Source: Scyliorhinus canicula
Taxonomy: Eukaryota
Assembly: GCF_902713615.1 (NCBI RefSeq)
Contig: NC_052146.1
Coordinates: 181,924,143 to 181,988,142, forward strand
Reading direction: 5' to 3'
DNA length: 64,000 bases
The translations under genes and the position numbers were made by a program. The notes under the pieces were generated by a model. The model saw only the letters and a list, made by a program, of their open reading frames with translations, had not been told where the DNA came from and made no database searches. This document shows positions 6,092 to 63,800 of the stretch, in pieces. Position 1 is the first letter of the stretch. Each line of letters opens with the position of its first letter.

Positions 6092-6352
6092 TATAGAACA
6101 TACATAGAACATAGAACAGTACAGCACAGAACAGGCCCTTCGGCCCTCAATGTTGTGCCGAGCAATGATCACCCCACCCTACACCCGCAACCCAACAACA
6201 CCCCCTTAACCTTACTTTTTGGGACACTACGGGCAATTTAGCATGGCCAATCCACCTATCCCGCACATCTTTGGACTGTGGGAGGAAACCGGAGCACCCG
6301 GAGGAAACCCACGCACACACAGGGAGGACGTGCAGACTCCGCACAGACAGTG
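6092..6352 (-). mobile_element. 5'-truncated V-domain (HE1-like) SINE with CR1-type tail, inserted in the Penelope arm
   Basis: V-domain gtgggtttcctccgggtgctccggtttcctcccacagtccaaagatgtgc; tail gggccgaagggcctgttctgtgctgtactgttctatgttctatg. Confidence 0.88.
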
Positions 6353-6936
6353 ATATGTGCGGAACTTGGCTATAAACTCCTGCTCTACGATTCTGCGTTG
6401 TTGCGCGTCCTGAAGGCCGCCTTGGAGAACGCTTACCCGAAGATCAGAGGCTGAATGCCCTTGACTGCCAAAGTGTTTCTCGACTGGAAGGGAACATTCC
6501 TGCCTGGTGATTGTCGCGCAATGTCCGTTCATCCATTGTCGCAGCGTCTGCATGGTTTTGCCAATGTACCACGCTTCGGGACATCATTTCCTGCAGCGTA
6601 TGAGGTAGACAATGTTAGCCGAGTGGCACGAGTAGTACCACGTACCTGGTGGGTGGTGTTCTCACGTGTAATGGTGGTACCCATGTCGATGATCTTGCAG
6701 GCCTTGCAGAGATTGCCATGGCAGGGTTCTGTGGTGTCGTGGTTGCTGTTCTGAAGGCTGGGTAGTTTGCTGCAAACAATGGTCAGTTTGCGGTTGCGCG
6801 GTTGTTTGAAGGCAAGTAGTGGGAGTGTGGGGATGACCCTGGCAATATGTTCGTCTTAGATAGATAGATAGAGAAATACAGCACAGAACAGGCCCTTCGG
6901 CCCACGATGTTGCGCCGAACTTTTGTCCTTGGTTAA

Positions 6937-7145
6937 TCATAGAATTTTGGACAATTTTTCATGGCCAATCCACCCAACCTGCACATCTTTGGACTGTGGG
7001 AGGAAACCAGAGTACCCGGAGGAAACCCACGCAGTCACAGGGAGGATGTGCAGACTCCACACAGACAGCGACCCAAGTCGAAATCGAACTTGGGACCCTG
7101 GAGCTGTGAAGCAATTGTGCTATCCACAATGCTACCGTGCTGCCC
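6937..7145 (-). mobile_element. V-domain SINE (tRNA head plus V domain) embedded in the CR1 3' UTR
   Basis: GGGCAGCACGGTAGCATTGTGG..GTTCGATTTC head, V domain, flanked by TTAA, between the ORF2 stop (7179) and the CR1 tail. Confidence 0.88.
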
Positions 7146-7178
7146 TTAAGAAGTTAACCTACACTCCATTATTCTACC

Positions 7179-10000
7179 CTAATCCATGTACCTATCCAAT
7201 AGCCGCTTGAAGGTCCCTAACTTTTCCGACTCAACTACTTCCACAGGCAGTGCATTCCATGCCCCCACTACTCTCTGGGTAAAGAACCTACCTCTGACAT
7301 CCCCTCTATATCTTCCACCATTTATCTTAAATTTATGTCCCCTTGTAATGGTGTGTTCCACCCGGGGAAAAAGTCTCTGACTGTCTATTCTATCTATTCC
7401 CCTAATGATCTTATAAACCTCTATCAAGTCGCCCCTCATCCTTCTCCGTTCTAATGAGAAAAGGCCTAGCACCCTCAACCTTTCCTCGTATGACCTACTC
7501 TCCATTCCAGGCAACATCCTGGTAAATCTCCTTTGCACCTTTTCCAAAGCTTCCACATCCTTCCTAAAATGAGGCGACCAGAACTGCACACAGTACTCCA
7601 AATGTGGCCTGACCAAGGTTTTGTACAGCTGCATCATCACCTCACGGCTCTTAAATTCAATCCCTCTGCTAATGAACGCTAGCACACCATAGGCCTTCTT
7701 CACAGCTCTATCCACTTGAGTGGCAACTTTCAAAGATCTATGAACATAGACCCCAAGATCTCTCTGCTCCTCCACATTGCCAAGAACCCTACCATTAACC
7801 CTGTATTCCGCATTCATATTTGTCCTTCCAAAATGGGCAACCTCACACTTGTCAGGGTTAAACTCCATCTGCCACTTCTCAGCCCAACTCTGCATTCTAT
7901 CTATGTCTCCTTGAAGCTCCACCAATCTTCGTATCATCTGCAAATTTACTGACCCACCCTTCAACTCCCTCATCCAAGTCGTTAATGAAAATCACAAACA
8001 GCAGAGGGCCCAGAACTGATCCCTGCGGTACGCCACTGATAACTGGGCTCCAGGCTGAATATTTGCCATCCACCACCACTCTCTGTCTTCTATCGGTTAG
8101 CCAGTTTGTTATCCAACTGGCCAAATTTCCCACTATCCCATGCCTCCTTACTTTCTGCATAAGCCTACCATGGGGAACCTTATCAAATGCCTTACTAAAA
8201 TCCATGTACACTACATCCACTGCTTTACCTTCATCCACATGCTTGGTCACCTCCTCAAAGAAGTCAATAAGACTTGTAAGGCAAGACCTACCCCTCACAA
8301 ATCCGTGCTGTCTATCCCTAATCAAGCAATGCCTTTCCAGATGCTCAGAAATCCTATCCCTCAGTACCCTTTCCATTACTTTGCCTACCACCGAAGTAAG
8401 ACTAACTGGCCTGTAATTCCCAGGGTTATCCCTATTCCCTTTTTTGAACAGGGGCACGACATTCGCCACTCTCCAATCCTCTGGTACCACCCCTGTTGAC
8501 AGCGAGGGCGAAAAGATCATTGCCAACGGCTCTGCAATTTCATTTCTTGCTTCCCATAGAATCCTTGGATATGTCCCGTCAGGCCCGGGGGACTTGTCTA
8601 TCCTCAAGTTTTTCAAAACGCGCAACACATCTTCCTTCCTGACAAGTATCTCCTCAAGCTTATCAGTCTGCTTCACGCTGTCCTCTCCAACAACATGGCC
8701 CCTCTCGTTTGTAAATACTGAAGAAAAATACTTGTTCAAGACCTCTCCTATCTCTTCAGACTCAATACACAATCTCCCGCTACTGTCCTTAATCGGACCT
8801 ACCCTCGCTCTAGTCATTCTCATATTTCTCACATATGTGTAAAGGCCTTGGGGTTTTCCTTGATCCTACCCGCCAAAGATTTTTCATGCCCTCTCTTAGC
8901 TCTCCTAATCCCTTTCTTCAGTTCCCTCCTGGCTATCTTGTATCCCTCCAGCGCCCTGTCTGAACCTTGTTTCTTCAGCCTTACATAAGTCTCCTTCTTC
9001 CTCTTAACAAGACATTCAACCTCTCTTGTCAACCATGGTTCCCTCACTCGACCATCTCTTCCCTGCCTGACAGGGGCATACATATCAAAGACATGCAGTA
9101 CCTGTTCCTTGAACAAGTTCCACATTTCACTTGTGTCCTTCCCTGACAGCCTATGTTCCCAACTTCTGCACTTCAATTCTTGTCTGACAGCATTGCATTT
9201 ACCCTTCCCCCAATTATAAACCTTACCCTGTTGCACGCACCTATCCCTCTCCATAACTAAAGTGAAAGTCACAGAATTGTGGTCACTACCTCCAAAATGC
9301 TCCCCCACTAACAAATCTATCACCTGCCCTGGTTCATTACCAAGAACTAAATCCAATATGGCCTCCCCTCTGGTCGGACAATCTACATACTGTGTTAGAA
9401 AAGCTTCCTGGACACACTGCACAAACACTACCCCATCCAAACTATTTGATCTAAAGAGTTTCCACTCAATGTTTGGGAAGTTGAAGTCACCCATGACTAC
9501 TACCCTGTGACTTCTGCACCTTTCCAAAATCTGTTTCCCAATCTGTTCCTCCACATCTCTGCTGCTATTGGGGGGGCCTATAGAAAACTCCCAACAAGGT
9601 GACTGCTCTTTTCCTATTTCTGACTTCAACCCATATTACCTCAGTAGGCAGATCCCCCTCGAACTGCCTTTCTGCAGCTGTTATACTATCTCTAATTAAC
9701 AATGCCACCCCCCACCTCTTTTACCATCCTCCCTAATCTTGTTGAAACATCTATAACCAGGGACCTCCAACAACCATTTCTGCCCCTCTTCTATCCAAGT
9801 TTCCGTGATGACCACCACATCGTAGTCCCAAGTACCGATCCATGCCTTAAGTTCACCCACCTTATTCCTGATGCTTCTTGCATTAAAGTATACAAACTTC
9901 AACCCATCTCCTTGCCTGCAAGTACTCTCCTTTGTCATTGTTACCTTCCCCACTGCATCACTACGTGCTTTGGCGTCCTGACTATTGTCTTCCTTAGTTG
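7179..10000 (-). pseudogene. CR1 ORF2 (AP endonuclease plus reverse transcriptase), broken by several frameshifts
   Basis: [63 protein letters not shown] spread over ORFs 9696-9953, 8829-9629, 7897-8832, 7179-7973; 5' limit approximate. Confidence 0.92.
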
Positions 10001-62097: not shown

Positions 62098-62173
62098 TGT
62101 ACAACACCAGGTTAAAGTCCAACAGGTTTGTTTCAAACACTAGCTTTCAGAGCACTGCTCCTTCCTCAAGTGA
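62098..62173 (-). mobile_element. Penelope pLTR fragment with mutated hammerhead core (TTGAGGA)
   Basis: Homologous to 12471-12545. Confidence 0.75.
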
Positions 62174-63059
62174 GTTGCTGAAAAGGAGTCACAAGGTAGG
62201 GGGCAACCTTCTCCCTCACCTGTAACGGCAAGCTGCAACCCCCTCCATGCTGGAGGCTTGAGAGCCTACCCACCGTCCATAATTGGACAGTGAGTGTGCC
62301 CGCTGGCCACGAATTGGCAAGTTCAAGGAAAATCGCTGCTTGGTAATTGCTTCTGGCGTGGTGTGAGGTTAGGACCTACTCTCCCCGACCCCAATGTCCG
62401 GGTGCCAACCCAAAATCCTTCCTTTGAGTTAAAATCTCATCAGGGCAGGTACTTAAATTCAGATAATTAAATAAATCAGGGGCAAACAAAATACTCTTCA
62501 TAATGGTGACAATGAAGCTATAGGACTATAAATCCATTTGGTTTACTAAAAGGGAAAGACGTCTGCTATCTTTATCCCCAGTCTACTATATAGAGTCCAG
62601 GCACACACATATTGTTGACTTTTGACTGCCCTCTAGCAAGCCACTTGGTTGTCAAGGAGATGGTTTGTCATCACCTTCTGAAGGGCAATGAGGGGTGGAC
62701 AATAAATGTTGATGTGCTCACATCCTGAGAATTAATAAGAAAAATCAGTAGGGTTATTAATAATAACTCGGATGTAAATAACTAAATTACTGATAATCAT
62801 TGGGGTTGTAAATCACGGGTTGTCACAATTTTTGGTTTCATTGTTCATAGTTTAATTATTTGAGTTTCAGGATTGATTTGTGAGACTCTAATGTTGTCAA
62901 TAGCAGCTTCCTGCAGGACCTTGTCCTCTCCTCAGGCTATGTTCCTTTTACCTTGATTTTCTGACTGTAAATAATTGTGGTTGTGTCATCAACACTTGCT
63001 CGGCAGGTTCACTCTCCTGTCAAACGGTGTCTCCTTGTACGTGGTTTCCCTCTGGAGGA

Positions 63060-63168
63060 ATGACGGCCGGTTCTATTGCAGTCCCACAAATCATCCCGCT
63101 GAGGGTTCCTCTCCCTGGCAAACCCAAAAGTGAAATCAATACCAACACTCCTATTGAAATCAAGTCAG
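63060..63168 (+). CDS. DZANK1: DZANK1 first coding exon ([36 protein letters not shown])
   Basis: Resembles recalled human [36 protein letters not shown]; CAG acceptor at 63004-63006; CAG|GTAAGA donor at 63169; head-to-head with POLR3F as in human. Confidence 0.92.
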
Positions 63169-63567
63169 GTAAGAAAAAGGCTGGTTACTTGATCACAGTG
63201 GGTAGAGAATGACTCTACCGTTGTGAATGTTTGAGGGGTAAGCTCAGTAATCTAACCAAGGGAATATACTTGCCTCCAGACGCAAAGGACACTACTTCTT
63301 CAATCAAGCTCTGTGAGCCCCTCACTTAGATCTCACTAGGCTCTTGCAGATCCCCAATTTTTGTCACACCAGCATTGATGGCTGTGCCCTAAAATCTGGA
63401 ATTTTCTCATTAATCTCTCTGTCACTCCTCTTTTAAGACCTCCCTTAGAAACTACCTATTTGACCCAACTTTTTTTGATCTTTGGTTCTGATATCTCCTT
63501 CTTTGACTTGGTGTCAGATTTTATCTGACTATGCTTTTGTGATGTGTCTTCAAATATTTGACCATAT

Positions 63568-63800
63568 GGGCAGCACGGTGGCGCAGTGGGTTAGCCCTGC
63601 TGCCTCACGGCGCCGAGGTCCCAGGTTTGATCCCGGCCCTGGGTCACTGTCCGTGTGGAGTTTGCACATTCTCCCCGTGTCTGTGTGGGTTTCGCCCCCA
63701 CAACCTAAAGATGTACAGGTTAGGTGGATTAGCCACGCTAAATTGCTCCTTAATTGGAAAAAATAATTGGGTACTCTAAATTTTTAAAAAAAATTTAAAA
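63568..63800 (+). mobile_element. Poly(A) V-SINE with 16-bp TSD
   Basis: AAATATTTGA(C/T)CATAT at 63552-63567 and 63801-63816. Confidence 0.9.

Follow-up and report, generated by a model that had tools for sequence, protein, structure and literature searches.

The stretch of DNA analysed here, called the window below, comprises 64,000 nucleotides of the shark Scyliorhinus canicula (assembly GCF_902713615.1, contig NC_052146.1, positions 181,924,143 to 181,988,142 of the forward strand). It contains 16 copies of a tRNA-headed short interspersed element (SINE) that end in different 3′ tails, copies of a separate tRNA SINE, and long interspersed elements (LINEs) of the CR1 clade, of the L1 clade and of a third lineage that resembles Rex1/Babar. 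SINEs rely on LINE proteins, and a change of 3′ tail is an accepted route by which a SINE outlives its partner. We consider it likely that the SINE body in the window diversified by its tail only, across different LINE partners.

The SINE body and its CR1-type tails

With the copy at 18421-18758 as query, BLAST matched ~16 related stretches in the whole window. The original prediction had proposed one body with three tail types, and BLAST and alignments place a copy of the SINE body at every coordinate it listed. In alignment the copies are alike in a tRNA-like head and a conserved central block of ~100 nt, which is kept across all tail classes within the window, and they diverge downstream of the block. 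The head carries a B box (GGTTCGATYCC) at position 57 and an A box (TGGCGCAGTGG or TAGCACAATGG) at position 12-13, a spacing that is tRNA-like, and in some copies the A box has decayed. The motif of the central block is one that we take to be V-like, and the element, referred to here as the V-SINE, looks like the HE1 member of the V-SINE superfamily known from sharks. An Rfam scan of the window gave no family match, and in an ARAGORN scan of the window just one SINE head, that of the tRNA SINE at 47505-47694, was called tRNA-like. By tail the 16 copies divide into seven with a CR1-type tail (of two kinds, A1 and A2), seven with an A-tail (B) and two with a stem-loop tail (C). The CR1-type copies and the CR1 LINEs of the window are as follows.

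18421-18762, plus strand: V-SINE A1, full length; the BLAST reference copy, B box at position 57
6092-6353, minus strand: V-SINE A1, 5′-truncated, ending in TTCTATG repeats; body 97% identical to the 18421 body
17382-17704, plus strand: V-SINE A2, with a different outer stem
43098-43413, minus strand: V-SINE A2
58722-59022, minus strand: V-SINE A2
45628-45805, minus strand: V-SINE head followed at once by an A2 CR1-type tail, without the central block
6949-7146, minus strand: V-SINE head and central block within the 3′ untranslated region (UTR) of a CR1 LINE; a single copy that groups with the A1 bodies
6858-6948, minus strand: 3′ tail of a CR1 LINE, a nested stem-loop followed by TATC repeats
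7179-10972, minus strand: CR1-clade LINE, nearly complete, with endonuclease (8829-9629), reverse transcriptase (RT; 7897-8832) and C-terminus (7179-7973)
4945-5673, minus strand: CR1 3′ end, copy b
52750-53263, minus strand: CR1 3′ end, copy c, degraded
63815-64000, minus strand: CR1 3′ end, copy d, cut by the window edge

The nearly complete LINE has Pfam matches to RVT_1 (6e-29), Exo_endo_phos_2 and Lipase_GDSL_2, and its C-terminal motif is presumably CR1-like. Its first open reading frame (ORF1; 10037-10972, minus strand) carries the GDSL lipase/esterase domain (Lipase_GDSL_2, 9e-14). Four CR1 3′ ends are present in the window, one of them on this element, and the CR1-type SINE tails align to all four over 54-120 nt with z-scores of 5-18; the same tails gave no alignment to the L1 or stem-loop LINE ends of the window. 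The best pair is formed by A1 and the tail at 6858-6948 (88-89% identity), with the tail of the 18421 copy reaching 89% over 54 nt, which bears out the earlier claim that the CR1-type SINE tails match the CR1 tail at about 6865-6925.

The termini of the CR1-type tails are built as a nested stem-loop in which the inner GGGCC-loop-GGCC hairpin is constant and the outer stem varies; TTCTATG-type repeats come after it. The outer stem is GGCACA/UGUGCU in A1 and UGCAGA/UCUGCA in A2, and it covaries around the constant hairpin, a difference that points to two CR1 subfamilies as partners. The distinction between two kinds of CR1 tail was absent from the original prediction, as were the CR1-tailed copies at 43098-43413, 58722-59022 and 45628-45805; the last of these either lost its block by internal deletion or is a plain tRNA-CR1 SINE. 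In a scripted search with random flank controls, no target-site duplications (TSDs) above chance were found for the CR1-tailed copies.

The cassette at 6949-7146 sits between the stop codon of the CR1 ORF2 (7179) and the terminal stem-loop of the same LINE (6858-6948), and an RNA polymerase III (Pol III) transcript initiating in it would carry the CR1 tail at its 3′ end. It could be a snapshot of tail gain by a SINE or a mere nested insertion.

The A-tailed form and the L1-clade elements

The seven copies that had been listed as a short poly(A)-tailed form are all confirmed.

13801-13980, plus strand: V-SINE B; 15-bp TSD
26694-26860, minus strand: V-SINE B, 5′-truncated, with a 19-A tail, inside L1 copy #2; 11-13 bp TSD
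44066-44293, plus strand: V-SINE B, an older copy whose TSD is no longer recognisable
51101-51328, minus strand: V-SINE B; 15-bp perfect TSD, A box and B box present
58272-58481, minus strand: V-SINE B; 13-bp TSD
60511-60735, plus strand: V-SINE B; 14-15 bp TSD with one mismatch
63568-63804, plus strand: V-SINE B; 16-bp TSD with one mismatch

All seven have the same 18-bp deletion within the central block, and in each the 3′ end consists of a short A/T-rich stretch followed by 5-19 A's. The scripted search found TSDs of 13-16 bp abutting both ends in 6/7 copies, duplications that were equalled by 0-1 of 300 random flank pairs. All six TSDs begin A- or purine-rich and are preceded by T- or pyrimidine-rich bases (n=6). 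Form B shows the hallmarks of L1-type integration, an assignment supported by the A-run, the 13-16 bp TSDs and the 5′-truncated copy with its TSD. Compared with the beginning of the A2 tail, the B tail gave no homology past the point where the central block ends; it is the body tree described below that suggests that B may be a truncated CR1-tailed form.

At least four L1-clade fragments, rather than the one noted originally, lie in the window.

97-4443, plus strand: L1-clade LINE #1, with an ORF1-like part, endonuclease, tower, RT start and C-terminus, ending in AATAAA and an 8-A run
26368-31572, minus strand: L1-clade LINE #2, ~5 kb, ending in A-runs; broken by the B SINE at 26694-26860 (with TSD) and the tRNA SINE at 29099-29316
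22969-24058, minus strand: L1-clade 3′ fragment #3, ending in a 10-A run
59121-60099, plus strand: L1-clade fragment #4 (endonuclease and tower)

None of these is intact, and all three of the 3′ ends finish in A-runs. Outside the RT the fragments align collinearly with human L1 ORF2p; the first matches residues 178-383 (4e-19) and 1048-1160 of that protein, has a weak zf-RVT match and has lost most of its RT (~800 nt vs ~2 kb expected). The stretch that contains it (1-4443, plus strand) is G-rich, with 60% GC, a GC skew of +0.36 and long G-runs. Since the second element is broken by both a B SINE and a tRNA SINE, both SINE types were inserted later than this L1.

The 13-16 bp TSDs with A-rich starts, together with 5′ truncation, are the signature of L1-type target-primed reverse transcription, and it is therefore most likely from the A-tailed L1-clade elements, common in the window, that form B borrows its machinery. 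Such L1-type mobilisation of a shark SINE is probable and is the one point of wider interest here. Copying of B by some other RT that accepts A-rich 3′ ends (Tx1-like, RTE-like or Penelope-like) would agree with the lack of any LINE-derived region shared with L1 and with the degenerate state of every L1 copy in the window, but we regard it as unlikely: long TSDs with A-rich starts, an A-run and truncation with a TSD make up the classic L1 signature, three L1 3′ ends finish in A-runs, and no other A-tailed LINE was found in the window. The short A/T-rich terminus (14 nt) that B has in common with an L1 3′ end was rejected as a sign of tail capture.

B resembles the L1-dependent SINEs with relaxed recognition (Alu, B1 and the poly(A) SINEs of plants) in its A-run, its lack of a LINE-derived region, its 13-16 bp TSDs and its 5′ truncation, and differs from them in being a tRNA/V-domain SINE of a shark. 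One review (PMC3747384) assigns relaxed recognition by L1 to mammals and flowering plants. If L1 does copy form B, then an A-tail would be what makes a template acceptable to shark L1, as it is to the L1 of mammals and plants, a finding that would bear on whether relaxed recognition is ancient or has arisen repeatedly, the question raised in PMC3747384.

The stem-loop tail and a Rex1/Babar-like LINE

The third tail, C, is carried by two V-SINE copies and, as the original prediction had not noted, by five copies of a separate tRNA SINE that lacks the central block. A LINE 3′ end with a similar terminus also lies in the window.

44601-44912, plus strand: V-SINE C, whose tail ends in GTGACAATAAA and ATT-type repeats
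47001-47270, plus strand: V-SINE C, 5′-truncated, with flanks unrelated to those of 44601
29099-29316, plus strand: tRNA SINE without the central block, long-form C tail
30339-30516, plus strand: tRNA SINE without the central block, short-form C tail
35210-35393, plus strand: tRNA SINE without the central block, short-form C tail
47505-47694, minus strand: tRNA SINE without the central block, short-form C tail; tRNA-like gene by ARAGORN
52637-52720, minus strand: C-tail fragment of a 5′-truncated tRNA SINE
42489-42940, minus strand: 5′-truncated LINE 3′ end, Rex1/Babar-like, with the ORF2 C-terminus (42671-42940), 3′ UTR, hairpin (42502-42532) and AATCC-type repeats

The two V-SINE C copies are 81% alike, with identical junctions and unrelated flanks, and the scripted search with random flank controls found no TSDs above chance for the stem-loop-tailed copies. 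For one of the tRNA SINE heads with a C tail, ARAGORN assigned the anticodon AAA. The pattern TTTCACWGTR, a gap and GTGACAATAA has eight matches in the window vs none expected, and these are seven SINE tails and the one LINE end.

The stem of the terminal hairpin is CACUGUA...UACA-C-GUG in the LINE vs CACAGUA...UACU-Y-GUG in the SINEs, a difference of one compensatory pair (U-A to A-U) with the place of the bulge unchanged. The window LINE end is 91% identical to the C tails of the tRNA SINEs over 33 aligned nt, and its match to the C tails of the V-SINEs is weaker (73% over 51 nt; 88% over 16 nt). The earlier claim that the stem-loop tail resembles the LINE end at 42489-42535, placed by us at 42489-42545, thus holds for the terminal hairpin, which is common to both over 33-40 nt; in calling that end Rex1 it went too far.

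The C-terminal motifs of this LINE are ones that we take to be Rex1/Babar-like. Its C-terminal peptide is unrelated to that of the window CR1, and a protein look-up returned 2516 relatives, some of which carry ALKBH8_N and one of which carries RVT_1. An attempt to assign the clade through the RT-bearing relative (P0142) was uninformative, the protein being a degenerate gene model with 25% identity to the CR1 RT and no PDB match. Among contigs of metagenome assemblies (ENA and JGI), three (L001-L003) are shark host DNA. Two of these, L002 and L003, hold independent copies of the LINE with the same hairpin followed by AAATC repeats, and in the third, L001 (1-620), the C-terminus of the stem-loop LINE is broken by an HE1-like SINE in reverse orientation. 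Two more distant relatives of the LINE lie on L004 and L005. The one on L005 (1640-1735), probably from a teleost, reads TTTCGC...GCGACAATAAAC and then ACTTTG repeats, with the stem covarying again; the terminal motif seems to be conserved between sharks and bony fish with covarying stem bases. A scan of metagenomes for the hairpin pattern, which is too loose there, returned at least 120 loci, none of them related to the shark elements.

In its published description (PMC6274825), Rex1 has a conserved 3′ UTR and, after it, an oligonucleotide repeat that varies in length. A conserved 3′ UTR with variable oligonucleotide repeats is what we find in the window copy, L002 and L003, and the architecture of its 3′ end, with the motifs named above, makes the stem-loop LINE one that fits the description of Rex1/Babar.

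Whether the V-SINE took its C tail from a LINE or from another SINE can be judged from the extent of the matches. Between the C tail and that of the tRNA SINE at 29099-29316, identity is 83-88% over ~120 nt, vs the 33-40 nt that the C tail has in common with the LINE end, so that acquisition from a SINE is as likely as capture from a LINE. A stronger version, in which the tail derives from another SINE and not from a LINE and the V-SINE is a secondary passenger, has somewhat less than an even chance in our estimation. The same reasoning has been applied to CmiSINE and SacSINE1 (PMC5499810). Against it, the window may simply not contain the LINE subfamily that is the true partner, and the weak similarity between the upstream part of the C tail and the L002 and L003 3′ UTRs would fit direct LINE capture; moreover, the mode of mobilisation is the same under either origin.

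Tail exchange, its timing and related systems

A maximum-likelihood tree of 12 near-full SINE bodies places the B bodies in one clade (support 98/97), clusters the C body with A1, the cassette at 6949-7146 and the A2 copy at 17382 (90/90), and pairs the remaining two A2 copies together (90/81). The A2 tail is thus found on both body groups and looks ancestral, with the A1, B and C tails looking derived. Pairwise identities within the classes are 97% for A1, 91-94% for B, 83% for C and 75-82% for A2, the most divergent, which suggests that the classes differ in age and that the CR1-tailed and A-tailed forms were active recently.

From these body relationships, and from the anatomy, the tail-LINE similarities and the contrast in TSDs observed above, we infer which LINE protein copies which form and in what order the tails arose. 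In this account a tRNA-headed SINE, transcribed by Pol III and conserved in its central block, would have diversified by changing its 3′ module only. Its probable ancestral form would have carried a copy of ~100-150 nt of CR1 LINE 3′ end (the nested stem-loop and TTCTATG-type repeats), with copies inserting without long TSDs, as CR1-type elements do. Form B would have arisen by loss of the CR1-derived part, gaining the 18-bp block deletion, an A-rich stretch and a terminal A-run. In form C ~110 nt would have taken the place of the tail, with the hairpin, GTGACAATAA and a series of short tandem repeats at the end. This hairpin matches the conserved 3′ terminus of another LINE lineage, the one fitting Rex1/Babar; being common to another tRNA SINE, this tail may stem from SINE-SINE recombination.

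Several points weigh against tail-only diversification across LINE partners. The sample of 16 copies from a single 64-kb window is small, and the likeness to HE1 is a tentative one. The B tail has no LINE-derived region when compared with the LINE 3′ ends of the window; its sole likeness to an L1 end is the weak one of a 14-nt A/T-rich terminus on L1 copy #1, and its other local matches fall within the central block. The C tail shares with the window LINE end only its last 33-40 nt (the hairpin and GTGACAATAA), its upstream part is modestly similar to L002 and L003 (z-scores of 3-5), and no LINE subfamily matching the full C tail was found in the window, L002 or L003. What the window contains of the stem-loop LINE is a 3′ end that lacks the RT, and Rex1/Babar is a putative name for it. 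The proposal that each tail resembles the 3′ end of its LINE hence stands for the CR1-type tails, stands for C in the terminal hairpin only, and fails for B. Similarly, the statement that all three LINE clades are present in the window is borne out for CR1 (RVT_1) and for L1 and, by 3′ architecture, for a Rex1-like end, and it overstated the presence of the actual partner of C.

That the tail classes are chance chimeras, produced by nested insertions or assembly joins, and not amplified families is very improbable. Form C is represented by two window copies only, and the V body inside the CR1 3′ UTR shows that nested arrangements occur; against this, the two C copies have identical junctions in unrelated flanks, and the seven B copies have one diagnostic 18-bp deletion and TSDs of their own. 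For B and the CR1-tailed forms, the chimera reading is already contradicted.

A closer call is whether the partners were used successively, in waves that each replaced a silenced partner with one active at a time, and we give this almost even odds. The spread of body identities, from A2 (75-82%) through C (83%) and B (91-94%) to A1 (97%), speaks for it, as does the description of tail switching as an escape from silencing of the partner (PMC5499810, PMC4824008). However, the two youngest classes, A1 (97%) and B (to 94%), differ in tail, which suggests that recent CR1-type and L1-type mobilisation overlapped, albeit in a tiny sample. The original prediction held that the SINE exploits CR1, Rex1/Babar and L1 machinery in parallel. 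That the SINE used different partners has good indications in the case of CR1 and of L1-type integration and is plausible in that of the Rex1-like LINE; the words "in parallel" claimed too much.

Tail-only diversification across partners would be a clear new example of a well-known trick of SINE survival and is no new mechanism, the tail-switching or "module exchange" model being established (PMC5499810, PMC4824008, PMC3531059). The HE1/HER1 elements of sharks and rays (Ogiwara et al. 1999) are listed among the V-SINEs (PMC3747384), and, compared by description, the CR1-tailed forms fit them in having a tRNA head, a conserved central domain and a LINE-shared 3′ tail in an elasmobranch. They differ in that two kinds of CR1 tail occur here and in that B and C lie outside the published description in the papers that could be searched. 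In the V-SINE superfamily (Ogiwara et al. 2002: DANA, Lun1, SINE2-1_XT) one central domain is likewise combined with the tails of different LINEs, but there the tails are split by species, with CR1-3_DR/ZfL3 as partner in zebrafish, L2 in Xenopus and LfR1 in lungfish (PMC3747384), whereas here at least three to four tail types, an A-tail and a stem-loop tail among them, occur on one body lineage in a single genome. The exchange of tails in CORE-SINEs (Ther-2 vs Mar-1) involves another conserved domain and host, with L2 and RTE and not CR1, L1-type or Rex1-like elements as partners. A parallel to the V-SINE C and tRNA SINE pair is offered by CmiSINE and SacSINE1-CM of the elephant shark, in which differing heads and bodies acquired one LINE-type tail through SINE-SINE recombination (PMC5499810); that system has an L2-2_CM-type tail together with CORE and Deu domains. 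SINE2-5_NV and Rex1-24_NV of Nematostella (PMC3747384) combine a tRNA SINE with a Rex1-clade LINE, in a cnidarian, and the Rex1 label in our case is putative. No vertebrate Rex1-SINE pair was found in the searchable papers, and a search of papers, as distinct from Dfam/Repbase, gave none on an A-tailed or Rex1-tailed shark V-SINE.

The window thus offers a compact single-genome example of one body with two CR1-type tails, an L1-marked A-tail and a LINE-mimicking hairpin tail, and for annotation the tail forms are best handled as separate SINE families with different partners. As a joint reading, we tentatively put forward that a shark L1 with relaxed A-tail recognition amplified a V-SINE that had shed its CR1 tail, while the same body, by mimicking a hairpin, exploits a LINE of Rex1/Babar type; the odds are against both parts holding together. 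If true, it would place relaxed L1 trans-mobilisation of a SINE beyond mammals and flowering plants and the first vertebrate Rex1-SINE partnership in one genome.

The nearest protein relatives of the window LINEs are from Scyliorhinus, the best at 89% identity. Outside the repeats, an ORF at 42018-42446 (minus strand) has a 52-residue match to the RNA polymerase III subunit Rpc34 (6e-21) and, on that match, is probably an exon of POLR3F, which would place the repeats in and around that gene.

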